Source of the DNA: Utricularia gibba
Lineage: Eukaryota > Plantae > Magnoliophyta
DNA: 59,519 bases
Assembly (NCBI GenBank): GCA_002189035.1
Contig: NEEC01000050.1
Span: 1 to 59,519, forward strand
Reading direction: 5' to 3'
Part shown: piece by piece, positions 17,779 to 59,269 of the stretch
Position numbering within the stretch: the first letter of the stretch is position 1
Layout of the letters: the number at the start of each line of letters is the position of its first letter
Translations under genes and position numbers: made by a program
The notes under the pieces: generated by a model
Told to the model about the DNA's origin: nothing
The model's input: the letters and a program-made list of their open reading frames with translations, nothing else
Database searches by the model: none

Positions 17779-19925
17779 TCACGGACTTGATCGGAATCTG
17801 CACCTCCAGGCGGAGACAGCAGTGAGCTCCTGCCCTCTCCAGCAAAGAACCAGCGACGACTGCCTCTTTTCGACCTGAAATCCCTGAACCGGAGTCCTGT
17901 TGATGACGCACTCTGCCTGCGATTCTGCCAAGTTGCTGAATGCCACGGGGGAGAAGCCGGATGACAACAACATGGACCTCCAATGCTGAGTCTTCTTCAG
18001 GGAACGGAATCGGCTCGTCACGATTCGTTCGAGTGCGGGTTGAATCAAGAAGCTTTCGATCTTCTGCAGGGTATCAAGATGGGGATTAGCAGCATAAATG
18101 GAGTCCAATACGGTGGTGAGGGAATGCAGAGCATGGATCAGATGGTCAGGGAACGAGAGATCAGTCCGATCGCATCCTTGGTCTGTGGAGACGACGATTC
18201 TGGGCCGTAGCTGCTTCACCAACCTGAGAATCAAAGGCATTGAGAACTGATAATTGGCTACGGATCCAACTGGGAGATTCACAGCAACTGCGCCAGCCTC
18301 TGACCATGAACCAGAGCTCAATGAATCGATGCTCGTAGCTTCGAACTCGAACGATATATTGACATCATTCGCGAACTGAGTCAAGTTTTCCCGGATCAAG
18401 CCGAGTTCGAGGTGATTGTTGATCAATGGCGAGACGATAGCAGTGATCTTCATGGAAGTAGATCGGCCACTTCGTAATGCAAGTTCTTGGATAAGAGAAG
18501 CCCACTGTCCGCCATAACCAATATCGAAGTCGATAATGTGGATCCGGTTGAACCCCTCCAGAGACTCGAGAATGGCTTGATTGGAAGTCAAGTTTTGGAA
18601 GTGCAGAAGTGGGGATATCTCAGAGAAGGCTTTGTATGCTCCAATCCGAGAAATGATGCTAAATGGCGGCGTCTTCCTCACCGTCGTCATCAAGGGATCA
18701 TCGACGTTGTTGCTGGTGGATTGGAGGAGCAACTGCAATGCCTCCTTGGAATAAAAAGCAGCCCTCTGGAAAGGAATTCCATTGGGAGAGAGCTGATGAT
18801 TGAGCCGCGCCAATATCCCGTGCGCGAGTACAAAGTTCCCTGTTTGGACGAGCTCCGCCGCCTGGTAAAGCAGATCACTCGTCGCCTGCTGTCCGAAATC
18901 ATCACAAACAGTTAACTTTGGCTTCTCCTTCTGCCATTGGTGTTGACAACTAGGAAGAAACTGAAGCTGAGGGGAAAATTGCTGCTGAAGAAACACTGTA
19001 TGTTGCCCAGAATCCATGAAAGGCCCTTTAGAGATCTGGCCGGCAGAGTCAAGGCCGACGTCAGCGAAGCGACCGAAGTTTTGTCTTTTCGCCGGTGGTG
19101 GACAAAGATGCTCTGTTCTTGCTGCACCGAGGATGGGACGGGGAAGAAAAAGGAGGGATTTTGGGACTGCTGATTGATCAGAATGTGAGAATTTAAAATG
19201 GAGGGCTTCGTTTCGGGACAGGGATGAAGAATGCCTTGGGAAATGGGGGAAAACTTGAAACATGTAGGTTGATCAGGATAGGGGGACAAAGAAGAAATCC
19301 TTTGAGAACTGGGTCTGTCGTTATCGAGGAAGACTGGAAGCGTGGGCGTCTGATGCACAGCCGCGAACCCACTGCTAAAGTCGAACTCCGCCGCCGGAAA
19401 CACGCCGCCGGCCCCAATCTGAGGAGCCTTGTTCATAACCAGAGCTGCGTCTTCAGCGTCAGCCATAATCCACCGAAGAATGGACTCTTCGTGATTGGGA
19501 GAAACCGCAGTCGACGCCGACAGCACGCTCTCCCAATCCTCCATCGTAAATTTCTCCGTCCCCCCACAGCCGACGCCTTCAAATTCCATAGAACGGGGAG
19601 ATGCGATAAGAGCTTTTCCAACGGCATTGGAGCTTGTAGCAGTAGAGCCCCGTTGCCATTTCGCCGCCGTGTCAGTAGAAGCACTACCGGCAACGGTGCT
19701 CCCCCCTCCCTCGCCGAGAGATGAAGACAGTGTTGACGACGATGTGGGTCTGCTCGGAGTAGAAGCAGACTCCAGCACAGACGTAGGCTCACCAAAACCA
19801 CTGCAATTACTCAGCTGCAACAACTCACCGCCACTGTCCGAGAAAAAGGTTCGATTTTTCACGATCAAATCCAAGTCCAACACCTCTTTCCCCTCAAAAT
19901 CTAAGGGCAAGGGCATCCCCTTCAT
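17779..19925 (-). CDS. HAM: GRAS transcription factor, HAM/SCL6 clade, intronless; one frameshift near 19100
   Basis: MKGMPLPLDFEGK start, EPTSVL and WIM motifs, VHIID box (RIHIIDFDIGYGGQWASL), SAW motif and miR171 site. The two ORFs join by adding one base at 19100-19101 (IFVPPPAKR). Confidence 0.93.
18797..18817 (-). promoter_or_regulatory. miR171 target site in the HAM mRNA
   Basis: The + strand reads TGATTGAGCCGCGCCAATATC, the mature miR171 sequence as recalled, so the minus-strand mRNA carries a perfect complement. Confidence 0.95.
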
Positions 19926-38025: not shown

Positions 38026-41000
38026 TTATTCAATGTTGATTGTCACAACCTTCTTTGCTTTTCCTCTCTGTGACTGCCCCCCACCGGAACCCTCCCTGAA
38101 AAGAGGATCCTGAAACCCACCCCATGCTGTAGGTGCTCCAAGCCGGCCACCTGCGTTCTCTGTCACCGATTGACTCACCATTGTAAATAAGAGCTTGTTT
38201 GATCGTATTACCTGACAGATTTACCTGAGTTTGTTTGAGAGCCAAAGGGGCTTGCGAAACCTGGGAAATATTTGCCGGTGCGCCCCTCCCAAGCTTGATC
38301 AAAGCCAACAAGTTCATCTGCCCACAACGAAGATGCATCTCATTATACAGTCGCTGGAAACTGATGCTTCACAAATCCATGATTCTTGGGGTTCATAGAC
38401 CAGCTGACCTTCATTTATGTTGTGAAGAGTCTGCATTGTGTCCACCTTACCACTGGAATCTAGCTTCCTGGTAACTGAATGCCCCTGTTGAAGGAGCAGT
38501 ATTACACCATTCGCTTCTTGCCTTCTTGACGTGAAACAAAAAGAAACAGAAGGAAGAAAAAGATAACATTCGTTTTGGCACCTTTTGGTGAATTCCCCTG
38601 GATATCTTATGTGTTGCTTCACCAGTTGTTCTGTTAGCCTCTCTGCTCTCCTCGAATGTCATCTGCTAAAATGTTCATGCACAGCGTTATAAATCTAATA
38701 GCACAGCTAATATGCAACAAAAAAAAAAAAAATTCAGATAAGTAGGAACATGCCCCGTCGTTCCCTGTGGTACGAGATGTTGTCGCTGTGTAATATGTTC
38801 CGTTGATACCACCATATGTCACCCTCTGGAAGCTCATGCTACGAGTCCTGGATTCCGCTACATCGACCTTGTTGTCATGCATGCTGTTTGGGGCTCTTCT
38901 GTGGTTGCTATCTTTAGCCCCAGGAACTGCCGCATCTGAAATCAGAGGAATAGTGAGGCTAATCCTGAATAGCTCAAAAACTTGTCAAGGTGCAGAGAAG
39001 GTTCAACTTACGATCTTCCTGATCATCTGGATGCTCAATAATTGGATGGCTGTCAGCAACTCCATCATTACCACCTCCATTTCCCTCGGTTCTGTCCGAA
39101 TCCTGTTCGTTATCCCCATCCATCTCTTCGATTACAGGCCCCTGCATCTTGTGCAAATGGCTATGGTTATCAGTGCGGAATATATCAGACCTGGAGGCAC
39201 GGCCAAAGGTAAAAGTATTTTTGGCTGCTTGATTTTGTTGGAGACTTGGTTGAACGTTGAGAGAATGTTGAAGTTTGTGGATATTGACTATTGTTTTTGG
39301 ATCGAAAAGAACTTTCCTTTATTTTCATAAAGCAAACAGGGATTTATATAGATGAGGAGAGTTGCCCGTTGGATCATATCAGGCCTAAAATATGACCGTT
39401 GCCTTTAGTCTGTAGATTAGTCCTCTTGTTCATCTACTGTGTAGCAGCCAGAATTTACTAGGACTTCTTTCATGGACTGGGCTTCAGATGCTTCTTCTTG
39501 GGCCAGTAGTTTGGAATGTTGAGGCCCAAGTATGATAAGGCCTTTTTCCCAATCTAATTGAGGGTTGCTTCTCATGGGAGGAACAGAGGTCGCGCGCCAT
39601 TCATCTTCGCGGGTTGAGACTTCCCGGATCTTCGTTGCTCCACCACTTGCTGACATTCCTCCCTGAGGGAGTAATGAAGATCCGGCTGTTGTCACAAGAG
39701 GATTTCTCCGAATTCCCAGCATTTCTCTGATTCTGTTGAAATTCCTTGGGAATAAGCATTTGGTGAGAATATCTGCAGGTTGCTCATCCGATGGTAAGTA
39801 CTCAAGTTTAATCAGTCCTTCCTTCACATAATCTCTGAGTATATGGTATTTAAGCTTGATGTGCTTGGTCCGACCGAACATCACAGGATTTTTTGCGATG
39901 CTAATGGCAGATTTGTTATCTATCTTGAGTATTATCGGTCTTGTAATTTGAATTTTCAGGTCATCGCATAATTTCACCAACCATTGCGCATGGTTGGCAG
40001 CAGCAGCTCCTGCGATGTATTCGGCTTCTGCCGATGATTGTGCAGTGACGGCTTGTTTCTTGCTGTTCCATGAAAATACCGCTGATCCTAAGTTGAATAG
40101 ATAGCCTGTGGTAGATTTACAATCTTGTTCGTCGCCAGCAAAGTCTGAATCAACAAATCCCTGCAAAATAGGGTTAGTACCTTTCTTGTAATATAAACCA
40201 AAGGAAGTTGTGGCCTTCAAATATTTCAGGATACGTGTTGCTATTTCCAGGTGTGTGTTGTGTGGCTGATGCATGAATCTGGCCAGAAATGATACGGCGA
40301 AGGTTATATCCGGTCTAGTAGCAGTTAAATACATCAGAGCGCCAATGAGTTTCTGGTAGTTATGAGAGTCAACTGGATGAGAATTAAGGTCAGATAATTT
40401 CTTTCTAACTTCTGGTGAGAAAGGAGTAGTAGATACTTTTGATGATTCCATGCTGTATTTTTTGAGTAGTTCCTCTGTATATCTACGTTGGTTCAAAAAT
40501 ATGAAGTCTTTATGTTGAATGATCTCCATTCCTAGGAAATAACGTGCATGTCCCAGATTGGTGAGTTCAAATCTTTGCTGCAATAGCTTCTGTAATTCAG
40601 AAATTCGTTCTTCACTGCTGCCTGTGATTAGAATGTCGTCTACGTATAAGGAGACAATAACTTTTCCTTGGATATCCTCAGATATGTATAATGTAGTATC
40701 ATTTTGACTTCTTGTATATCCCAGCTCTAGAAAGAAAGTGTCAATGGTAGTATACCATTCTTTGGGGGCCTGCTTGAGTCCGTATAAAGCTTTATTTAAT
40801 TTCAGTACATATTCTGGATTATCTCGGATGATGAAACCTGGAGGGGGTTCACATATATGTCTTCGCTTAACTCTCCATGCAGAAAGGCCGTTTTTATGTC
40901 CAGATGATGTAAATACCACTTGTTGCAGGCCGCAAGTGCAATAATCAGCTTAATGGTGTCTAATCTTGCCATCGGAGCGAAGGTTTCCAGGTAATCAATC

Positions 41001-44000
41001 CCTTCTTTCTGTAAATATCCCTTTACCACCAGTCTGGATTTTCTTTTGTTCAGAGTGCCATCAGGATTTAACTTGGGACGGAATATGAATTTTAGGTCCA
41101 GAGGTTTTTTCTGCTTCGGCTTAGGCACTGCTGTCCAAACGCCGTGTTTCTGGATGGAGTTGAATTCTTCGTCTATGGATTTCTTCCAATCTGGGTCAGC
41201 GAGAGCTTCCTGAACGCTTGCTGGTTCATAGGTGCTCAATGCCCTATCATAGATATCGTTGATTGGTGCATATCCTCGCACAGGTGAGCTGTCTTCATTT
41301 TGTTTCAGATCCATACATAGATGATGTGGGGTGTAAGGAACCCCTTCTTGTCCGTAATCTTCCAGGTAACTTTGCCTTTGAGGTGAGGGAATGAGTATAG
41401 GATTTCTTGCTGCTAGGTTGGGTCCTCGGTTTTGAGTTTCTTCATCTTCTCCTGATGAGTTTTCTTCTTCTGATGTATCGGTTGATGATAGCTCAGTGAT
41501 TTCCTTTGGATTTCTGATGCTGTTGATGAGGGTTTCATGACATTCTAGAGTTTGTTCAGGTATGTGCTCTGAGTCTGCATCCTCATATCTCATGTCTTCG
41601 ATAGTAGTGGCCATGCAACACGGTGCTTCAGTTTTAAAGCCTTGTATCTAATTCTCAATATCTATGCATATGTCTTTCAACACTGAACTTCTCGAAAGTA
41701 AAATCTCATTCAGATTTTATCTTAAGACTCGCGGGCCAGGAGTAATTCAGTTGATGAGGTCCTCCTCTTCAGGATTGTTGGGAGGAGCCTGTGGCATCGA
41801 AACCAGGAGGTATGAACACTACATCATCCCACATCGACACCGAACCATCCTTCATTCCTTGGATCATGTTCTCGAGTACATCAACCTGAATGTCTCCTTT
41901 TCTCAGTGCAGGATATGATTGTCTCTGATCACCAGCAGCTCTTAACAGAGACTTCTCTAGATCCTCCTTGCGGAAGAACACGGGCCTGTATCGCTTATCC
42001 TGAGTCCGTAATATTAACCTCTGTGACTGGAAAACCGGAACCCCACAGAAAGTGTCATCTGGAATTCCATCTTCTTGGCGTACCTTTAAGGCGTTCCTAA
42101 TCTGTGAAGCTTCGGGTAGCAACCTTAGAGCAACTCCATCAACCTTAAGCTGAAATACCTTGCATAAATCAACTGGAACAACTTGTGAGTCCAAACTCAT
42201 GGATGGATTAGAAGCCTTCATCTGATTGAGAAGTATCTCAGCATCCGCTTCACTGAAGCAAAACAATCCCAAACTTTTCCCTGTACTCTTCCCGAAACTA
42301 AAACAAATTCTCGCGCGGCATTGCTGAGAGCGAAAACCGGAATTCCGGAAAGCCTCTTCTCTATATCTTCTGCAGCCATGGTGCGTTTCTTTGTATTGAA
42401 AAAAGCATTTTCACTGGGCACAGCGTTAAGGACTTTGTTATCCTAGTACTACTCTCGCCCAAGCACGCTTAACTTCGGAGTTCTGATGGGATCCGGTGCA
42501 TTAGTGCTGGTATGATCGCACCCCTGGGAAGTCCTCGTGTTGCATCATGTCCTTGTTGAGGGAATAAATTCCATATATTTTCTGAATAAGAATGATTTTT
42601 GTCATGTGTTGTCGAGGAACTCCAGTTGTAAATTCTAGTCTCGTCTACTGTTACATCACGACTGAGTTCCACCTCATTTGTTCTTAGATTCAGTACCCTG
42701 TAGGCTTTACTTGTATTGCTATATCCCAGGAAAATTCCTTCATCAGATCTTTTGTCCCATTTTGATCTCTTCTCCTTTGGAATGTATATATAGCAGGGTG
42801 ATCCAAATACCTTCATGTGATCTAGGCTTGGAATTTTGTTGTACCATAGCTCATAAGGAGTTTTACAGTCTTTATTTCCTTTGGTTGGCAGGCGGTTCAA
42901 CAGATACACGGCTGTGTTGACTGCTTCGCCCCAGAATTCTAGAGGTAAGTGTTTTTGATAGAGTAGACACCGAGCCATATTGACTATTGTCCTGTTCTTT
43001 CGTTCACATATGCCGTTCTGCTCTGGCGTATATGGCGTTGTAAACTGGTGAGTAATACCATTTGTCTCACAAATGTGTCTCAGTTCAGTTGATTTGTACT
43101 CACCTCCGTTGTCTGACCGGAGTGTTAGAATCTTACTATTGCTTTGAGTTTCTGCAAGGACCTTGAAGACTTGGAAGTGGTGCAAAACCTCTGATTTATG
43201 CTTCAGGAGATAGATCCAGGTATACTTTGAATATTCGTCAATAAAGATCACGTAATATTTGTTGCCGGCTCGAGTAGGAGAGGCCATGGGCCCACAGACG
43301 TCACTGGTAACAACTTCCAATTTTTTCTGAGAATGAATGCTGGACTTAGGGAGTGGTGTTCGGCTCATCTTCCCTTGAAAGCATATTCTGCAGTGTTTTT
43401 CCTCAGGAATTATATTAGGAATCCCCTCTGCCAGGTTTCTCTTCTTCATGGATATAAGGGAGGCATAGTGATGGTGACCTAACCGTTGGTGCCAAATCTC
43501 AGATGATTCTAGGGACTTGAGGCAAATGTTGTAATCGATGGATGTAGCATTCGGAAGCAGTGGAAAGACCCTATCAGTCATAGCAACCGTAAGGAGTATA
43601 TTATCTTCTTCATCTAATATTTTGCACTCATTACTTTCCAGATGAACTTTCATCCCCTTTTCAACCAGCTGGCCAGTGCTTAGTAGATTGTGGTAGGCCT
43701 GGGGCACCAGATACACGTCTGTGATCTTGATTAATTTCTGGACAGTTTCAAGGCAAACTGTTCCTTGACCGATGACCTGTAAGTGATTTCCATCAGCAAT
43801 TTCGATTACTTTCCCAGTTAGCTCGATGAAGGTTGTGAATAGACTCTTGTCGTTGGTTATATGATGACTGCATCCGCTATCGATAAACCAGATGTCTTGT
43901 TTCCTTAGATCCACAAATGATGTGATTAGAGTTTTGCGGCGCAGAGAGTAAATATCAATCTTCTTCTTATTCATTTCAGCTGCGAGATTTACATCATTCA

Positions 44001-45528
44001 TAGCGCTAGTAAGTTTGTCCTTAGGATCTGCAGCCTTTCCTCCAATCTGATGGTATTTTTTCAGGGGACACACTTTGTCCACATGACCTTGGAGAGAACA
44101 GTACAGGCATTTGGCGTCAGGGCTCCAGAAACATTGTGTTGGTGAATGGCCTTTTCGCTTGCAGAATGGGCATGAATCTCCAGTACTTGGTTTCTCAATT
44201 TTTGCTTGAAAGATCACCGGTTCATTTGATGATTGAGAACCATAGCCTTTCTGATTTTCTGTTGCCTTGAAGGCAAGTTCCTGGCCTTCACCAAGTCCGA
44301 CTTCAACTTCGGATTCACTGAGTCTTTCTAGTAGTTTTCTGGAGGATATGGAGTGAATGCCTGTGACCCGCAAAGTAGTGACTACAGGGGCAAAGGACCG
44401 CGGTAGGGAACTGAGTATTTTTGATTTAATTCTTCTGTCTTCCAAGGGCTCTCCAAGGTCTGTAACTCAGTGACAATTTTGATTAGCGTTTCTGAAAAAT
44501 GAGAGATACTCATACCTGGTAAGAATTTCAGGTTGTCAAAGAGCTCCCATTGACGTTGAATGCGGCTCTCACGGGCTTCCGTATCCTCTCCGTAGAATTC
44601 CTCCAATTTTTTCCAGATGTCTTTGGGACTTTTCAGTAGCATAACACGGTTGAACACTTCTTCAGATAAGGCTTGATCCAGAGCATACTTAGCTTTCTTT
44701 ACTTGAGCATCTGTGAGTTTGAGACTTTCTGCTGTGGCTATTTCAGAGGAGTCTGGACGTACAGGATCCACCACAGACCATAAGTCGTTCATTTGCAGGT
44801 AACTTTCCATTCGTACTGCCCAAGAAGCGTAGCGCTGACCAGTGAAGATTGGAGGAGCTTGTTGGAGGGCTGCCATTCTGAGAGACTGCAATGATAAGAG
44901 GAGATGGGAGTCGGTGAAGTATCTTCACGTCGGGTTCACCATAAAAGTATTTTTGGCTGCTTGATTTTGTTGGAGACTTGGTTGAACGTTGAGAGAATGT
45001 TGAAGTTTGTGGATATTGACTATTGTTTTTGGATCGAAAAGAACTTTCCTTTATTTTCATAAAGCAAACAGGGATTTATATAGATGAGGAGAGTTGCCCG
45101 TTGGATCATATCAGGCCTAAAATATGACCGTTGCCTTTAGTCTGTAGATTAGTCCTCTTGTTCATCTACTGTGTAGCAGCCAGAATTTACTAGGACTTCT
45201 TTCATGGACTGGGCTTCAGATGCTTCTTCTTGGGCCAGTAGTTTGGAATGTTGAGGCCCAAGTATGATAAGGCCTTTTTCCCAATCTAATTGAGGGTTGC
45301 TTCTCATGGGAGGAACAGAGGTCGCGCGCCATTCATCTTCGCGGGTTGAGACTTCCCGGATCTTCGTTGCTCCACCACTTGCTGACAAAAGGGGCTGGTG
45401 AAGAAAGGGTCATCAAACGGAACCCTTCCACCAAAAGAATGCTGAAACATGCTCGTCCTGGAACCAAAATGATCAAATATGGTCCGCCCGCTCTTCGATG
45501 CATCGCCGATTTCTCTACGCCCTTGCAT
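38026..45528 (-). CDS. Myeloid leukemia factor (MLF)-like gene, interrupted in coding exon 1 by a Copia element
   Basis: Exon 1 reads MQGRRE..GGRVPFDDPFFTSPF (45528-45388) and resumes in frame after the element as GRASRSD..GPVIEEMD. Later exons: SFQRVTYGGINGTYYTAT, TFEESREA..HKISRGIH, GHSVTRKLDSSGKVDTMQTLHN, ending KVVTINIE*. Confidence 0.85.
39210..39655 (-). repeat. 3' LTR
   Basis: Direct repeat of 44942-45387 with no mismatch found by eye. Starts TGTCA and ends TTTTA on the minus strand. TATA-like TATATAAAT at 39350-39342. Confidence 0.96.
39417..41644 (-). CDS. Copia reverse transcriptase and RNase H (frameshift near 40850; ORF runs into the 3' LTR)
   Basis: EPASVQEAL, KSRLVVKGYLQKEGIDY, LDIKTAFLHG, LYGLKQAPKEW, SLYVDDILITG, FVDSDFAGD, SSAEAEY, IDNKSAI, ADILTK. 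Confidence 0.93.
39656..39664 (-). other. Polypurine tract
   Basis: AGGGAGGAA immediately upstream of the 3' LTR TG. Confidence 0.8.
41769..42379 (-). CDS. Intronless TIC22-like (plastid intermembrane-space import chaperone) copy captured inside the Copia element, lacking the transit peptide
   Basis: MAAEDIEKRLSGIPVFALSN..EFVLVSG, LGLFCFSEADAE, KVFQLKVDGVALRLLPE, GVPVFQS..LILR, YRPVFFRKEDLEKSL, GDIQV, WDDVVFIPPGFD. These match plant TIC22-like (TIC22-III type) proteins from memory. One base in the run at 42291-42293 joins the two ORFs into about 203 aa. Confidence 0.88.
42440..42546 (-). pseudogene. Rearranged 5S rRNA-derived sequence: nt 1-84 on minus (42523-42440) plus nt 94-117 on plus (42523-42546)
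   Basis: Minus strand GGGTGCGATCATACCAGCACTAATGCACCGGATCCCATCAGAACTCCGAAGTTAAGCGTGCTTGGGCGAGAGTAGTACTAGGAT and plus strand CCTGGGAAGTCCTCGTGTTGCATC both match the angiosperm 5S rRNA consensus as recalled. Confidence 0.95.
42469..44876 (-). CDS. Copia gag (UBN2-type, two CCHC knuckles), protease, GAG-pre-integrase and integrase (frameshift at 44446-44448)
   Basis: PPIFTGQRYASWAVRM, CPFCKRKGHSPTQC and CLYCSLQGHVDKVC, WFIDSGCSHH, WHQRLGH, SDVCGP..SDNGGEY..PEQNGICERKNRT, GIFLGY, SRDVTVDE. Confidence 0.93.
44924..44941 (-). other. Primer-binding site complementary to cytosolic tRNA-Trp
   Basis: Minus strand TGGTGAACCCGACGTGAA directly abuts the 5' LTR. The + strand TTCACGTCGGGTTCACCA equals the recalled 3' end of plant tRNA-Trp(CCA) plus CCA. 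Confidence 0.85.
44942..45387 (-). repeat. 5' LTR
   Basis: Direct repeat of 39210-39655, followed by the PBS. TATA-like motif at 45082-45074. Confidence 0.96.
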
Positions 45529-46310
45529 TTCTACTGTGCCTCCCATCAAACAACAGAACAATCCATGAATAAGCTTACCGATAACACAACAGACAAAACG
45601 GCACTTTCCATACACAAATGGGAACTGCGAGCTATTAAAACAACGAAACGCATTTATGACCAACAATTGACCGAGATCAACTCCTTCCAACGAAATTCGT
45701 GAAGCCAGAACATAGGCAAACGCCTTTCAACCCCCCAAAAAAACAAGCAATTGAGGCTTCAACCTAAACGAATGGAATAAAACTATTACATCAAGCAATT
45801 CTTGCAGTAAGAACCTGAAACCCCGGCAATCAAGCAATTGATCCAGGCCTTCCCTCACCCTTCCGCGCTCCAGAATCTGTGATTCAAAGCTTTTCTATTT
45901 ACTTCACGTAGGAGGATAAATATCAGGCTTACACGTGTCATCGCTACACCGTTTGTTATTTTAATCAATGGTGCTGGATCCTTCCAGTGTCTTCTTCCCT
46001 TCTCTCGCTTGCGGGAAGAATTAGCAATCGCCGGTTGGAAGGATGCCTTGGCCGGTTCGGCTACTGAAAATTGGCCGGTTTATTACAATTTTGAACGAAA
46101 TTTCAAATAAATACATAAGTTTTAGTTTTTTTTAAAAAAAATAGCATTGAATCCAACCCGGCGCCATGGTCCATGTCTCAATCTCAGAACCGACGGTCCG
46201 GTAGGAAGAAATTGTTTTATATATAATTTGGTGTAAGAGTTGGAAAAACCGCTGTGACGGAGTGTCTCAATTTCGAGCGAGAGATTCAGCCTCTGAACTT
46301 TTGGGAAGAA

Positions 46311-52269: not shown

Positions 52270-55200
52270 TCAAGGAAACGACTCCAAGGCGCAATAATTT
52301 TGTATCACAAGAAACTCGAGCTTTGAAGGAATGCCGTTCTCAGGAAAGGAGACCAGTTTACCACACATTCGAATCTCCAATCTCTTGCAATTTTCGAGAT
52401 TAACCAAATCATGGGGAAGGGAAACAAGATTCGGACAGTTTACCAGTTCGAGGTCTTCGATGTTGCATGGTAGAAGTTGATCTTTCGGTACCAAGAACCT
52501 TAGTGAAGCGCAAAAGTCGATCTTGATGCTCCTTAGATTGCTAAGATCACTGCGGGTGATCCCTTCAGTCCATAACAGTTTTAGATCCCTGCAACCATAA
52601 ACATCTATGCTTCGGAGTTTTGAGGAGGCCCGCAGAACATCCAAATTACGCACAGCTGAAATCTCGACCATCCGAAAGCTTTCCAAGGATTCAAGAGGGG
52701 CTTTGATACTTCCCATTAACACTCCACACTCACGAAGGTTCAAATCACGTAGAGAGGGCAAGGAAATCGGGAACACTTCTTCTAATTTTTCACAATGATA
52801 AATTTTCAGCATTTCAAGACGAGAGAAGAGGGCAACACCTCCTTTTTCTCTAGAAACAGTCCACTTCTTCCATTTCTCCATAGAATCAAATGTCAGAGTC
52901 TTCAGCATTGAAAATTGATTGCCAGAACTTCCAAAGAACTCATCTCCAATGCTTTGAACTTCTGGCAGGTAGCTTATCTTTAGGTGTTTAAGGCACGGAA
53001 GTTCTCCAAGACATGGTAAAGATGTGCAATTCCAGCACTCACTTATGGTTAGACTTGTTAGAATGGGGTTCCGCATACCGTCCCCAATCCAACTTGGAAA
53101 TCTCGAGCCTGAGTAGCCCATTACCTCCAATTTCTTCAAGTTCCGATGAGGTTGCAATACATCTGCAACATCTTCCTGTATCCCGGCACCATTACCATCA
53201 CCTCCCCATAGAAGGGTCAGGCTGTGAAGGTCACTTTTATTTTCAAGACAAAAGTAAGCATCTCTGACAATTCCATTGTGCAAACCATTTATGGTTAATG
53301 AATCACCCAAATGCTCCAAAATACGCAACTCTCTTAACCCAAAGCCCCCTCCTCTTTTCACTATGTGAACTTCTGATAACGTTTCAAGCCGCTTCAGCTT
53401 GGGGATGGAAGATGGCAGTTCGCATGAAGTGCCTGAGTTCTCAAGATGACGTAGGTTTGGTAAGTCACCCAATGCTGTTGGCAACCTGATCATCTTCTTA
53501 CAGTGCCTTATAGAGAGAGTTTCCAGGCAGACAAGAAGAACTATAGAATCCGGCAGTGTACTAATATCAGTTGCAGAGAGATCCAGATAACGTAAAATTT
53601 TTAACTCACCAATCGAGGTTGGAAGCTCTGTGATGGGACAACCCATCAAAGATAGCACCCTTAAGCCACTCAGCTTAGTCAACAACTCAGCTAAAGCCCT
53701 ATTTGATAACTTCGCCGGCGACCCATCAGAAGGATGCATTAATAAGAGAGTTCTCAACTTTTTTGGCACGCCGACAGTCCAGTGACTCCGGAATCCCTCA
53801 TCATAATCACTAAAACGAAGAGAAAGGTAGCGTACTTCCTCAGGCAATTGGTTGAGAGTAATTTCGTTGTATACATGGTATGCCCCCAGAGATTCAAGTG
53901 GCTCCAAGTAATCCTCACAAATCTCAAAGAGTGATTCACTGTTACTTCGACGTCGAAAATAAGACATCGACACCAACTTGTCGAAGTATTCGAAACCCAA
54001 TTCCTTCACACCTTGCCACCGTGATTTGCGATGATCAAGAAAACCTTCTGAAATCCACAAACGCAGAAGCTCATCCTTAGTGAAAGCGTATTTTCTCGGA
54101 AGTATAGCACAATAAGCAAACATGCGCTTCAAGTGTGAGGGAAGCACTTGTTCTGCATCGTTTAGATCCGACAGTACCTTCTCCCACTCTTCTCTTGTGG
54201 CTCTACTGCGTAAGCCGTGAGCAATGGATGAAACCGCCGAGGGTAAGCCTTCACATTTGTCCGCCAGCTGAAGAGCAACTTCCCTGAGGCCATACACAGC
54301 TTCAGCAGGCGGGCCGGCTATCTTAAACAGTAGGGTAACGCAATCTTCACGACTCCAACGCGGTGGGCGAAAGACATTGAAATGGACCTCGCGCTCCACC
54401 TCGGACTCGCACGCCAATGCAACACTCTCGAAACGAGTAGTGACGACAAATCCACATACAATTGCACCTTTTTTAAACTCCCTGATCAGCGATTTCAAAG
54501 TCGAAGCTTCCCAAACATCGTCCAGAACAATGAGGACCTTGGGGAACCCTTGCATGCCTAACGCTATCTGCAGAAGTCCCCACGTAGAAAGAATGTCATC
54601 TACACCATTCCTCGACACCAGCATGCGAATATTCTCCAAGGACGCAGACGTACTGAAGTTTCGAGAAACATGCACCCAAGCCCTCACAGGAAACATGCTT
54701 TGGACAGACTGGTTGTAATAAACAAGTTGAGCAAGAACAGTTTTCCCAATGCCGGCCACGCCAAGTATCGAAACCACCGTCGTCCCACGTTCAAGAAGGA
54801 ACATCAATGCAACTTCATGTTCGCCTCTTCCCACAATATCGCCATTAACAAAAGAATCTACGCTTTCAAGAGTTGAGACTTGACTACTTGACCTCCCACG
54901 GTTCTCAAGGCGCAACTCACTTCTCGGAGGTATCTGGTTGAGGAATTTGTCCATCCTACTTTCGATTTCTTTCATTTCCCGCATCGTTCTACGATTAAAA
55001 ATACAGGGCTCAGCAATAGGGAAAAGTTTCGGCATCACCTGCCTAATGGGATGCTTCGCTCGATCAACCATCTTTTCTAGAAAAAGATTGATGTCGTTGA
55101 CATCGTCCCTATGTGAGTCCAAATAATCTTTCAATGCCGCAGCGCGATCTCTGTCATGGGACTCTTCAGCGAACTCAAGGTTTGCGAGGATAAGAAATAA

Positions 55201-55299
55201 CTCTCTACGTATCTGGAGAAACTGTCCTCTCAGTCTCCCAGGGAGGGCATATGCTATTAGAGAATCCAAGCTATCCAGCAATGAATATACAGCATCCAT
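52270..55299 (-). CDS. Intronless CC-like NB-ARC-LRR (NLR) resistance-type protein with divergent NB-ARC motifs
   Basis: P-loop GVAGIGKT, kinase-2 LIVLDDVW, VVTTR, CEGLPSA, AYCAILP, L..LWISEGF and many LxxLxLxxC LRRs. Confidence 0.92.
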   Translation of the reverse strand: MDAVYSLLDSLDSLIAYALPGRLRGQFLQIRRELFLILANLEFAEESHDRDRAAALKDYLDSHRDDVNDINLFLEKMVDRAKHPIRQVMPKLFPIAEPCIFNRRTMREMKEIESRMDKFLNQIPPRSELRLENRGRSSSQVSTLESVDSFVNGDIVGRGEHEVALMFLLERGTTVVSILGVAGIGKTVLAQLVYYNQSVQSMFPVRAWVHVSRNFSTSASLENIRMLVSRNGVDDILSTWGLLQIALGMQGFPKVLIVLDDVWEASTLKSLIREFKKGAIVCGFVVTTRFESVALACESEVEREVHFNVFRPPRWSREDCVTLLFKIAGPPAEAVYGLREVALQLADKCEGLPSAVSSIAHGLRSRATREEWEKVLSDLNDAEQVLPSHLKRMFAYCAILPRKYAFTKDELLRLWISEGFLDHRKSRWQGVKELGFEYFDKLVSMSYFRRRSNSESLFEICEDYLEPLESLGAYHVYNEITLNQLPEEVRYLSLRFSDYDEGFRSHWTVGVPKKLRTLLLMHPSDGSPAKLSNRALAELLTKLSGLRVLSLMGCPITELPTSIGELKILRYLDLSATDISTLPDSIVLLVCLETLSIRHCKKMIRLPTALGDLPNLRHLENSGTSCELPSSIPKLKRLETLSEVHIVKRGGGFGLRELRILEHLGDSLTINGLHNGIVRDAYFCLENKSDLHSLTLLWGGDGNGAGIQEDVADVLQPHRNLKKLEVMGYSGSRFPSWIGDGMRNPILTSLTISECWNCTSLPCLGELPCLKHLKISYLPEVQSIGDEFFGSSGNQFSMLKTLTFDSMEKWKKWTVSREKGGVALFSRLEMLKIYHCEKLEEVFPISLPSLRDLNLRECGVLMGSIKAPLESLESFRMVEISAVRNLDVLRASSKLRSIDVYGCRDLKLLWTEGITRSDLSNLRSIKIDFCASLRFLVPKDQLLPCNIEDLELVNCPNLVSLPHDLVNLENCKRLEIRMCGKLVSFPENGIPSKLEFLVIQNYCALESFP

Positions 55300-55748
55300 T
55301 GACAAATCCGGGGCGTGGTTGTTCGCTTCTGTTTAATAAAGCACAAGATAAATGATTAGAATGGTCAGAAAACTCAAACCCAGATCCCAAGTATCAAAAA
55401 CTCCAACCAAACAGCAATACATACACGTTTGATTGTAAGAATTTGCAGGCCAAGGACCTAAAATGTAAAGAAAAGGGGCTTTTTGAGGGGTGCCTGATCT
55501 CAAGCAGGTTGCCGCGATGGAATGGTGGTTCTCCCCAGTGGTTATGAATCCTGTTTGTTTGCCGTCATCCATGATTTACTTCTGCCAGCGTCAGTTGCCT
55601 GTGTTCCATCGCGGCCAGCACTGGTCTTCCATGGCGGCGTGACCAGTCTTCCAGCTGTGTTTTGGAATTTTCATATGAAAAATTGAACCTGGTTGAGTAG
55701 TTCTTGCCTCTGTTCAACTACAACTTCAGTGACTTGATTTTAGCAAAA

Positions 55749-58302
55749 ATGGACGACAAAGAGACGGGAAACTCGAGACTGACCGTCGATCTCCAACGTC
55801 TTGGAGATGCGATGAACGAGAAGATGAAGAAAGCCAGGCAGGGGACTTCTCGAGCGCCTTGGATATGCCAAATCCCCAAATCCCTCCTGGGATCGATAAA
55901 AAGCATGTCATCCCAGATTGTATCTCTGGGTCCGTACCACCGTGGCGCCAAGTACCTGCAACCCATGGAAACTCACAAACGCCGTGCTCTTGACAGGGCA
56001 CTCTCTAGAAAAGGTCAGGGAATCCAGGCTTATCTTCAAGCGGTAAGAGAACTTGAGATGGAGGCGCGTCACTGTTATGAGGGAAACATTAGACTCACCA
56101 GTGAGGAATTTCTTGAGATGATGGTCGTTGATGGGTGCTTCATCCTAGAGGTCCTTAATGGAGCCGTAAGAGGATTCCAGAATCTTGGATACTCGGAAAT
56201 GGATCCCGTTTTCTCACATTCTGGGACAATGTTGAACATTCAACGAGATCTTATTCTGTTGGAGAATCAGATTCCCATGTTTATCCTCGACAAACTTCAC
56301 GGAATGGGGAAGGAGGAGTGTGACTTTGATGTTACTTATCTTGCTGGAAGGCTCTTCTTGCGTTTGATTCGTGGTGACCCATCGGCGAAGAATTGTTGGA
56401 ACGGTTTATGAACTCTTCCCAGATTCAAGGAAAGACCTTTCATTTACTTGATCTTCTACACAGCAAGCTCATTGACAACGCTTACAGCAACAAATTCTCG
56501 AATATGTACTGGGAGAACGACTTCGGCCCCCTGCTCGAGATGCGCCCCATTAGTGCTGTTAAAGATGTAATCAAGTTCAAGAGGGAGTTTGAGCCTCAGG
56601 AGTTGCTATGGGATGTGAAATTCCAAGGTGGAACCTTTGGGATCTCGTACGTCTCACTTGACATGAACATGAAGTCTCTTATGCTCAACTTATGTGCCTT
56701 TGAGCAACGCTGTTCGTCTCCAGAGAGGAAGAATTATGTCACGTCCTTCATGATCTTCATGAACTTCCTGATTGATTCCGCCGCCGATGTGGAGCACCTC
56801 AGGGATTCCGGGATCCTGAGGAATGACCTTGGAAGCGACTCCAAGGTGGTGGAGTTCTTCAAAGGCGTGAATCAAGCTGTGGTTTATGGTCGCCTCAATC
56901 CCGCGCTCTTGGAAGTTGCTATTGATTTCAAAGTCTATTGCAACGATCCATCCAACCTACCTTCAGGGCTTCTTGCTTTCGACATGCACAGGAAGATGCA
57001 TCAAGCTATAGAGATCAGAGAAGCCACTTCTAATCAAATCTGCATATACAGAATCCCGGCATTCCTCACAAAGTTCAAGATCAAAGCTCCCTATCCGCAG
57101 GTGGTGTCGATAGGTCCATATCACCGCCAGTCCTCGCAGCTGAGACCCATGGAAATTCATAAATGGAAAGCTGTTCATAATTTGCTTAAGAGAAATTCCA
57201 TGCGAATCGGGGATTATATCAATGTGGTGAAAGAGCACGAGAAGAAAGCTCGTGCTTGCTATGACGGCCTTGTTGACAGCGATGATTTCACGGAGACGAT
57301 GATCCTCGATGGCTGCTTCATTCTTGAGTTTCTTATGGGTGCCAAAATAGGATTCAAGAAGTGCGGTTACTCGGTTATGGATCCTGTTTTCTCCATTTCC
57401 GGGTTTATAGACATGATCAGACAAGATTTCATCCTGCTGGAGAACCAAATCCCCATCTTCATCCTTGAAGCACTTCATGGAATCAACACTTCGTCTGATG
57501 GAAAACAAGTTCGGGGTCTTGCACTAGAATTCTTCTATCCCTTGATTCGCGGGGGCGAGCCATTCCTGAATGAAAACCTCCGGAACGTCTTTACCAATTC
57601 ACCGAGTGTACCAGAAGAAGTTCCCCATTTACTGGGACTTGTACACTGGATGCTCAGAGTCATTAGTTTTGATCCCGAAACCAAAAGAATCAGCTCAAGG
57701 GAGCCTGCCGTGAGTGCAGACTCAGGTTCGGACCTCAGCCCGTTGCTCATGATGCGCCCTGTGAGTTATCTTAAAGAACATGGAATCAGGTTCAGAAGGG
57801 GAAGCTCCAGCATATCCTCTGGCATAAAACTCAAAAGGGGGTGCCTCAAGATTCCGCATGTTTTGCTGGACATGAGAATGAAATCTTTGTAATCAACCTC
57901 ATCGCCTACGAGCAACTGCATTCACACCAACTCAACAACAACGACGTCACCTCTTATATGATCTTCATGGACCGTTTAATAGACACGGCGGAGGACGTGA
58001 GATGCCTCCGGGAACGCGGGATCATTATGAATAGCTTGGAAGCCGATTCTGATATAGCCCACTTCTTCAATCGTGCATGCGAGTCTGTGGTTTACGGCCG
58101 CTTCAATCCCTTGCTTCTGGATGTTGCAAGGGACGTTGATAATTTCTGCAAGAACAAAATCAATGCTTGGGGCAAGGCGCTGGTGGAAGAACACTTGAGA
58201 AATCCATGGACCACCATGTCCATCGTCACTGCTGTCATGCTTCTGGTTCTCACATTTCTGCAGACCTTTTACGCCATGTATAGTTATCATCATCCTCATT
58301 GA
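55749..58302 (+). CDS. DUF247 (UPF0481) protein with two tandem DUF247 domains and one C-terminal TM helix; two 1-bp frameshifts
   Basis: Both halves carry IVSLGPYH/VVSIGPYH, M..DGCFILE, D.ILLENQIP.FIL, NL.A.EQ, VTS.M.FM..LID...DV..LR..GI. Frameshifts near 56390 and 57886 each need one added base. Confidence 0.88.
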
Positions 58303-58723
58303 AGACTCCGGATTTTCCATGAGGCAGGGCAAGAACCAGAAAAAAAACTTGTTTGCTTTTGTTTTCAATCAATGAGCTTGTATATTGTTTTAACGTGAAA
58401 CCCTCCAAGTCCTCCTACAGAAGAACAACACTAAGAAGAAAAAGACTCGATCTTTGGAATACCGTTGGCTATGTTTGTGCACACGGGAAGACAGAACCAA
58501 GGGGCTGTCCAATGACTAACTATTTGATGAAAAGTCCCTGTCTTTCCGTGTAGGGCCTGACAGGACAAGCTGCTAGAATACGATAATCCAATCCAATTTT
58601 TTCTCTTGTTGCTTATCTTAACTCATGAGGAATTTCTCTTATCTTATTACCCCTCCCACGTGTCGTCTGTTCGCGTTTCATTCTGTTACTTCATTTCTCA
58701 CTTGTGTTCTCTCCTTTCCCACA

Positions 58724-59269
58724 ATGCTAGATGTCCTAAATCTCTGCTCTTCACACCTGAAGCAACTGCTCCGCAAGATAGAGTTTCCCAGGAGCCCGAG
58801 AAGAAGCCCCAAACTGGATGCTTCCTTCGCGACGATGGCGATCTCGTCTCAAATGCGACACGTCTTCGAGGCAATCGACTCCAACGGAGATGGGAAGCTA
58901 TCCCCCGTCGAGGTGAAGCAGCTTCTACTGAATATGGGATATGAAAGTACTAATGCGGCGAACGAAGCCGAGGTGATGGTGCGGGTGCTGGATTTCGACG
59001 GCGATGGATTCGTGGACTTGCAGGAATTCATGAGTGCGATGGATGAGCAGGAAGATGGGGATTACGTTGCCGCTTTTCGGGTATTCGATGTGAACGGAGA
59101 CGGGCTAATCTCGGCGGAGGAGGTGCAGAGGGTGCTGAGGAGACTTGGGTGCTGCGGGAGGAAGAGCAGCCTCAAGGAATGCAAGAAGATGATTCGAGCA
59201 GTTGATAGAGATGGCGATGGGTTCGTCAGCTTGGAAGAGTTCAGGCTTATGATGACAGCTGGAGCTTAG
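58724..59269 (+). CDS. Calmodulin-like (CML) protein with four EF-hands, intronless
   Basis: DSNGDGKLSPVE, DFDGDGFVDLQE, DVNGDGLISAEE, DRDGDGFVSLEE. Confidence 0.92.
   Translation: MLDVLNLCSSHLKQLLRKIEFPRSPRRSPKLDASFATMAISSQMRHVFEAIDSNGDGKLSPVEVKQLLLNMGYESTNAANEAEVMVRVLDFDGDGFVDLQEFMSAMDEQEDGDYVAAFRVFDVNGDGLISAEEVQRVLRRLGCCGRKSSLKECKKMIRAVDRDGDGFVSLEEFRLMMTAGA

Follow-up and report, generated by a model that had tools for sequence, protein, structure and literature searches.

The stretch of DNA analysed here (the window, 59,519 nt) comprises positions 1 to 59,519 of the Utricularia gibba contig NEEC01000050.1. It carries on its minus strand a complete Ty1/copia long terminal repeat (LTR) retrotransposon with a composite cargo of about 911 nt (42550..41640), in which an antisense piece of 5S ribosomal RNA (rRNA), a sense piece of 5S rRNA and a fragment of a TIC22-like messenger RNA (mRNA) follow one another. 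An earlier note on this DNA had called the TIC22-like part a retrocopy. Its proposed origin from spliced mRNA held up in our analysis, but the copy does not stand alone: it is the cargo of a young Ty1/copia element and is fused to rearranged 5S sequence.

The Copia element and its composite cargo

The element is made up of the following parts, all coordinates being window positions.

39210..45387 (-): complete Ty1/copia LTR retrotransposon with cargo, 6178 bp (LTRs, target-site duplication, Copia domain order, collinearity)
44942..45387 (-): 5' LTR (446 bp); a TGG... that resembles a primer-binding site comes next (446/446 matches with the 3' LTR)
42551..44891 (-): gag, protease and integrase section of the Copia polyprotein (open reading frames, Pfam, polyprotein alignment)
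39656..41639 (-): linker, reverse transcriptase and RNase H section of the Copia polyprotein (Pfam, polyprotein alignment)
39210..39655 (-): 3' LTR, 446 bp, preceded by a purine-rich, polypurine-tract-like tract (LTR alignment)

The two LTRs were identical at 446/446 positions, with zero differences over 892 LTR bases, and the element is bounded by a perfect 5-bp target-site duplication (TSD), AAAGG (39205-39209 and 45388-45392). The open reading frames (ORFs) of the internal region matched, in Copia order, the Pfam domains Retrotran_gag_2, Pol_BBD, gag_pre-integrs, rve, SH3_retrovirus and RVT_2, and were collinear with the Copia polyproteins of other plants. The features that define a Ty1/copia element, i.e., LTRs, a 5-bp TSD and the order gag, protease (PR), integrase (INT), reverse transcriptase (RT) and RNase H (RH), were all found in 39210..45387. 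The insertion is very young because none of the 892 LTR bases differs; at the plant substitution rate in common use, 1.3e-8 per site per year, its age is probably below about 0.1 million years, with a 95% bound near 0.26 million years.

The Copia polyprotein is disrupted by two 1-nt frameshifts, one near 44448-44440 (gag/pol) and the other near 40850 (RT), both at short homopolymers, which may be inherited or RT-made defects, real mutations, or long-read assembly errors. The integrase frame continues into the cargo and meets a stop (42471..42469) inside the 5S piece, and the RT of the element is not translatable from its own interrupted polyprotein. No second copy of this Copia family was found in the 59,519-nt window. 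Its closest matches reached at most 59% protein identity, no uninterrupted relative was found, and the integrase-RT linker varied from 11 to 160 amino acids (aa) among the Copia matches; because of this low identity and these variable linker lengths, the relatives are of no help for mapping the junctions at base level. An exact look-up of four window ORFs, two of them from the Copia element, in the protein collection found none of them, which indicates that the host assembly is not indexed in that collection.

The cargo interrupts the variable linker that joins integrase and RT, on the same strand (-) as the element. Its anatomy is given here in element sense.

42551 (-): Copia sequence ...CAACAAGG, last base before the cargo
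42550..42547 (-): ACAT, 4 unassigned nt between Copia and the 5S-derived segment (junction inspection)
42524..42546 (+): 5S rRNA nt 94/95-117, antisense to the element (helix I pairing and plant 5S sequence)
42440..42523 (-): 5S rRNA nt 1-84, sense to the element (Rfam RF00001)
42380..42439 (-): 20 codons of TIC22-like coding sequence upstream of an internal Met, next to 5S nt 84 (orthologue alignment, ...SNEN...AKNxAM region)
41769..42379 (-): TIC22-like ORF, 203 codons by read-through, with a 1-nt deletion and six fused exon junctions (Pfam, homologue alignment, exon mapping)
41640..41768 (-): presumed TIC22 3' untranslated region (UTR) remnant without poly(A) (stops in all three frames; ACAAGG end)
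41639 (-): Copia sequence CTTTAAAAC..., first base after the cargo

The sense 5S piece was recognised by Rfam (RF00001, 69.6 bits against a gathering score of 38, E=1e-12) and starts exactly at the mature 5' end, and nt 85-93 of 5S rRNA are absent from the cargo. The antisense 24-mer (42524..42546), which is too short for Rfam scoring, we take to be the 3' strand of plant 5S rRNA, partly from the sequence of plant 5S rRNAs; it stops 1-3 nt before the mature 3' end. As in helix I of 5S rRNA, nt 110-117 of the 24-mer are able to pair with nt 2-9 of the sense piece at 8/8 positions, and this pairing supports the identity that its sequence suggests. Since both natural 5S ends sit at junctions, the template appears to have been mature RNA and not ribosomal DNA.

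The two 5S pieces meet in a 1-3 nt G overlap. When the 911 nt of 42550..41640 are taken out, the integrase frame (codon start 42552) continues into the RT frame (codon start 41641) without a shift, and apparently no Copia sequence has been lost at the cargo site. The 6-nt direct repeat ACAAGG is present on both sides of the cargo (41645..41640 and, in Copia, 42556..42551). In addition, CGTGTTGCAT in the sense strand of the Copia linker (41622..41613), about 20 nt from the exit point, is identical over 10 nt to nt 106-115 of 5S rRNA.

After the TIC22 stop codon, about 123-129 nt of noncoding sequence precede the return to Copia, in agreement with the possible 3' UTR of about 120 nt proposed before. 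This stretch has stops in three frames and no poly(A), and no homology was found between it and the Erythranthe, Primulina or Genlisea loci described below. A LINE-type processed pseudogene (LINE, long interspersed nuclear element) was ruled out because poly(A) is lacking: the 129 nt downstream of the stop contain no A run longer than 4.

A T6 run (42399-42404, -) lies on the element sense strand about 40 nt past 5S nt 1-84. Should RNA polymerase III still be recruited by the truncated 5S promoter, a 5S-TIC22 hybrid RNA of about 125 nt would stop at this run; such a transcript is doubtful because nt 85-93, which we take to be most of box C of the 5S promoter, are absent.

Identity, spliced origin and divergence of the TIC22-like copy

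The TIC22-like sequence falls into two ORF pieces, both scoring above the PF04278 cut-off of 23 bits. The first (42421..42218, -, 67 aa) matched the Pfam Tic22 profile PF04278 at positions 47-85 (E=1.6e-8, 34.6 bits), and the second (42272..41769, -, 167 aa) at positions 84-243 of 244 (E=4.1e-56, 190.4 bits). The homologue search with the 167-aa piece gave 143 TIC22-like homologues, the closest being TIC22-like proteins of Lamiales with 72-74% protein identity, and the relatedness to TIC22 proposed before is upheld by both results. From the ATG at 42379 to the stop at 41771..41769, with an X at the break, exactly 203 codons were counted by read-through, without a single in-frame stop and with the natural C-terminus reached, just as the earlier note had estimated. 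The one homopolymer frameshift that it reported is also there: the reading frame is broken once, by the loss of 1 nt in the codon that separates K (42277..42275) from L (42272..42270), between an A4 run (42275-42272) and a T3 run. As assembled, the frame of the ATG contains 35 TIC22 codons before the frameshift and yields a 53-codon product.

The conserved domain had been said to begin at this ATG, which proved wrong, as TIC22 homology extends about 20 codons further upstream, up to the 5S junction at 42439. In alignments with full-length orthologues the ATG corresponds to a conserved internal Met, at which some database entries of about 203 aa start too. PF04278 was covered from 8 to 241 in full-length orthologues and from 46 to 243 in the copy, which is without the first ~60-80 residues (the presequence region), so that the reported absence of the N-terminal targeting region was borne out. 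Like plant TIC22-like proteins of the chloroplast import apparatus (Tic22-III type, PF04278), the copy reaches the natural C-terminus and shows the identity to Lamiales proteins given above; unlike the genes for these proteins, it lacks the N-terminal residues and all introns, carries a frameshift and lies inside a transposon. A complete gene would have both a presequence and an uninterrupted ORF, whereas here the presequence region is absent and a 1-nt deletion follows codon 35. Judged by its sequence as assembled, the copy is a 5'-truncated mRNA fragment, i.e., a gene fragment and no functional Tic22 member.

For the intron comparison, annotated proteins were threaded through the loci of Erythranthe guttata (L001), Primulina (L003) and Genlisea aurea (L004), the orthologue exons were compared singly and substitution counts were added up exon by exon. 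In Erythranthe and Primulina the orthologous gene consists of 7 exons, and its six introns, all of phase 0, occupy identical positions in the two, with the same inner exon lengths (75/57/60/81/36 nt), and the Genlisea orthologue keeps five of the six introns. All six intron sites are contiguous in the window (42159|58, 42084|83, 42027|26, 41967|66, 41886|85 and 41850|49), confirming that the copy is intronless. Set against orthologues from three Lamiales families, one of them the family nearest to the host, the loss of the introns is demonstrated, and the sequence points to a spliced mRNA as the source of the TIC22 cargo. A parent that is itself intronless over this region had been named as the finding that would speak against capture; the orthologues of all three families have introns. 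Word-index searches for the parental TIC22-like gene, with the 167-aa piece and with a 285-column alignment (length about 157-499 aa), gave among the matches listed the TIC22-like proteins of other species. In the alignment-based search the best identity to the copy was 71.6% among the best 120 of 564 matches, and a divergent parent could lie outside these 120.

The ratio of nonsynonymous to synonymous substitutions (dN/dS), from Nei-Gojobori counts summed exon by exon, was 0.09 between the cargo and Erythranthe and 0.16 between the cargo and Genlisea, and 0.12-0.13 between true orthologues. The differences between the cargo and Erythranthe were distributed over the three codon positions as 41/31/103. 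Among 92 alignment columns conserved in at least 90% of 120 homologues, the cargo differs at eight (8/92) and the functional gene of Genlisea at 20/89; two of the eight cargo changes are identical in Genlisea and one more is similar. Long neutral decay of the cargo is ruled out by the dN/dS, the codon-position bias and the retention of conserved columns, and the neutral phase after capture is estimated from these data to be at most about 3-4% divergence. Because the divergence has the pattern of a constrained gene with no long neutral decay, the capture of TIC22 looks recent. In the tree, the cargo was placed inside core Lamiales (support 96 in the Shimodaira-Hasegawa-like approximate likelihood ratio test, SH-aLRT) and as sister to Genlisea (91), a position that fits an origin of the cargo in the host lineage; the low database identity seems best explained by a fast-evolving host of the Lentibulariaceae.

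The TIC22-like gene of Genlisea aurea is in itself a very fast-evolving orthologue, 20/89 otherwise conserved residues being changed. In this gene the fifth intron was lost, exons 5 and 6 being fused with a 3-codon deletion (L004 2187-2294).

Origin of the chimera

We consider it quite likely that the chimera arose by LTR-mediated retroposition, in which template switching of the reverse transcriptase copied co-packaged host RNAs into Copia. In the Copia virus-like particle, the RT copying the element RNA would have departed in the integrase-RT linker and copied a co-packaged spliced TIC22-like mRNA from within its 3' UTR back to about codon 60-65; the mature 5S rRNA would have been its next template, after which it would have rejoined the Copia RNA essentially at the departure point. 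The element's integrase would then have inserted the chimeric complementary DNA (cDNA), with its normal LTRs, into a host-gene exon, which would give the 5-bp duplication. This reading is supported because LTR, gag-PR-INT, cargo, RT-RH and LTR are nested and collinear, all on one strand, and because the mRNA copy is partial, without poly(A) and fused at the six intron sites. The marks by which LTR-mediated retroposition has been recognised, i.e., an internal position, both LTRs, the same orientation and a partial mRNA (PMC5131818), are all found here. The nested anatomy, the spliced origin, the RNA ends at the 5S junctions, the young age of the insertion and a cargo divergence of the constrained type are demonstrated by our results; template switching as such and the specific model for the inverted 5S piece are what we infer.

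LTR-mediated retroposition has been described in Drosophila and other animals, where a partial intronless mRNA copy lies inside one LTR element with both LTRs (Tan et al. 2016, PMC5131818). Such a copy may join several RNAs, short similarities are found at the switch points and the product is non-autonomous (PMC5131818). The cargo described here resembles that system in being an internal, partial and intronless copy, in combining several RNAs, in having no poly(A) requirement and in lying in a non-autonomous pseudo-element. In Drosophila, however, the retrocopy usually replaces part of the element ORFs, whereas here no Copia sequence was apparently lost; moreover, one of the RNAs captured here is a 5S rRNA, partly inverted, and microsimilarity is assessable at some junctions only. 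The plant precedents are Bs1 of maize and captures in LTR retrotransposons of rice and sorghum (PMC13317346; PMC5131818), in which, as here, host gene fragments acquired from RNA lie in a plant LTR retrotransposon in the same orientation. These plant cases are generally old (PMC5131818) and Bs1 is without most of its coding capacity, while the present element is near full length and has identical LTRs and an intact TSD.

5S-derived sequence in an LTR retroelement is also known from Cassandra, a terminal-repeat retrotransposon in miniature (TRIM) that has in each LTR a complete 5S-like unit with RNA polymerase III promoter and terminator (PMC7215508). In contrast, the 5S sequence of the present element lies in its internal region, in two pieces (nt 1-84 and 94-117) of which one is inverted, and lacks nt 85-93; Rfam found no 5S in its LTRs, and the sole 5S match was the internal one at 42440-42523. 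A Cassandra-like element was ruled out because the 5S piece is internal and fragmentary and because gag and pol are encoded in the element. LINE-1 produces chimeric retrocopies in which U6, 5S or other small RNAs take part (bioRxiv 10.1101/2025.02.02.635956; PMC4476161), and in these, as proposed here, a small structured RNA is joined to another transcript via RT template switching. These chimeras, however, arise by target-primed reverse transcription and have a poly(A) end and variable TSDs, whereas the vehicle here is a Copia element with a 5-bp TSD of integrase type and no poly(A).

Several points weigh against LTR-mediated retroposition. No microhomology is visible at the 5S-TIC22 junction, and the parental gene, against which the identity of the copy and microsimilarity at the mRNA junctions would be judged, was not among the matches listed. 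The flanking ACAAGG repeat has a chance probability of about 0.16 by shuffling, or an estimated 0.05 or so with the frame requirement, and that of the 10-nt match between 5S and Copia is roughly estimated at about 0.05; both short matches are suggestive and no proof. The 3' junction and the apparently clean insertion are placed by frame logic, there being no uninterrupted family member. Finally, priming by 5S, as described next, is only one among several switch orders that fit.

For the inverted piece, minus-strand cDNA would run off the 5' end of 5S rRNA at nt 1, and what was left of that 5S molecule on its 3' side (to nt 117) would then prime or bridge minus-strand synthesis on the Copia RNA; plus-strand synthesis would copy the RNA remnant and jump over the 1-3 nt of G microhomology to the stalled cDNA. 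This model accounts for the antisense orientation, the missing nt 85-93 and both RNA ends at the junctions, and we offer this sequence of run-off, priming and jump as a tentative one that may well be incorrect. It is unlikely, though conceivable, that nt 84 to 1 of one mature 5S rRNA molecule served as template and its nt 94-117 as primer or bridge, amounting to non-tRNA priming in a plant virus-like particle guided by the 10-nt identity, with an element that may remain mobile and transcribed in the compact bladderwort genome and spread a fragment of a plastid-import gene.

The timing may have been different. In an older capture, a non-autonomous Copia subfamily would already have carried the 5S-TIC22 cargo and been copied in trans, its latest insertion being the one seen here; only the timing would differ, as in Bs1, and we regard this as possible but not probable. 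The stop at 42471..42469 and the gag/pol and RT frameshifts make the element dependent on help in trans, yet its LTRs and TSD are perfect, and secondary retroposition of such chimeras has been documented (PMC5131818); a chimera made in the same cycle would have perfect LTRs as well, however, with RT coming from the particle of the parent element. That the top database identity of the cargo is merely 72-74% would suit an old capture, but it fits a fast-evolving Lentibulariaceae host too, the Genlisea orthologue being more derived (20/89). The constrained divergence (dN/dS 0.09-0.16), the 84/92 conserved columns kept, and one indel with zero stops across 203 codons argue against it. A processed cDNA of 5S and TIC22 might instead have entered, as a DNA-level insertion, a Copia copy that was integrated before, by LINE machinery or by capture of cDNA pieces in double-strand-break repair. 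The ACAAGG repeat could represent either a target-site duplication or microhomology used in repair, and apparently no Copia sequence was removed. Neither cargo end has a poly(A) tail, however, and with a sense cargo and identical LTRs this course needs two independent events within a short time in the same 6 kb; the junctions at natural 5S ends and the adjacent 10-nt identity between 5S and Copia fit a reverse-transcription complex instead. We therefore judge insertion at the DNA level to be very improbable.

A function of the cargo, as a mis-localised cytosolic TIC22 domain or as a source of small interfering RNAs (siRNAs) silencing the parental gene, had been proposed in the earlier note and seems to us hardly probable at all. 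The domain is near-complete (Pfam 46-243 of 244) and keeps 84/92 conserved columns, LTR promoters are able to transcribe such cargo (PMC5131818), and all three frameshifts of the element lie at short homopolymers and are possibly long-read assembly errors. On the other hand, the ATG frame as assembled stops after 53 codons, only 35 of them before the frameshift, and the ORF lies about 3 kb downstream in the element transcript, behind the gag-PR-INT ORF and out of frame with the integrase. A cytosolic chaperone domain is thus unlikely, since it would require that the frameshift be an assembly error and that a spliced or subgenomic RNA exist, and expression of a TIC22 protein from the cargo is, from the sequence, unlikely as well. 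Silencing of the parental gene in trans by hypothetical siRNAs is possible in principle, but the 24-nt siRNA pathway is reported to be weakened in U. gibba, which has a truncated DCL3 and few 24-nt siRNAs (PMC8333044). Being frameshifted, internal and without a targeting sequence, the cargo is most likely non-functional.

As LTR-mediated retroposition, the event is of a known type of plant gene copying, and its novelty is that of an unusually young and clean example. LTR retrotransposons that capture genes are an accepted source of new and chimeric plant genes. Most plant captures are old, with blurred junctions, whereas the junctions here are sharp and lie at natural 5S ends; identical LTRs, an intact TSD and sharp junctions together can reveal directly which RNAs the particle contained and at which points the RT switched. 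The element also indicates that retrotransposition and retroduplication are ongoing in the apparently very compact, transposon-poor bladderwort genome. For the biology of TIC22 the copy is probably of little consequence; its interest for mechanism is moderate.

The host exon and neighbouring genes

The Copia element is inserted, in sense orientation, in an apparent minus-strand coding exon with flanks at 38977-39207 (-) and 45394-45546 (-). When one AAAGG copy is dropped, the host frame ...DPFFTS / FGRASRSD... is continuous at the empty site. Pfam gave no match for either half of the interrupted exon, which is, by its reading frame, a candidate natural knockout.

Elsewhere in the window, an intronless GRAS-family gene of 494 aa lies at 17779-19263 (-), and an intronless ORF of 1011 aa at 52270-55305 (-) encodes a disease-resistance-type protein with NB-ARC/LRR domains. 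Two adjacent overlapping ORFs at 55704-57892 (+) both match DUF247 from profile position 1 and represent a tandem pair of genes or else one duplicated gene with a frameshift. A calmodulin-like protein of 214 aa with EF-hand pairs is encoded at 58625-59269 (+). The gene density of the window fits a compact genome.

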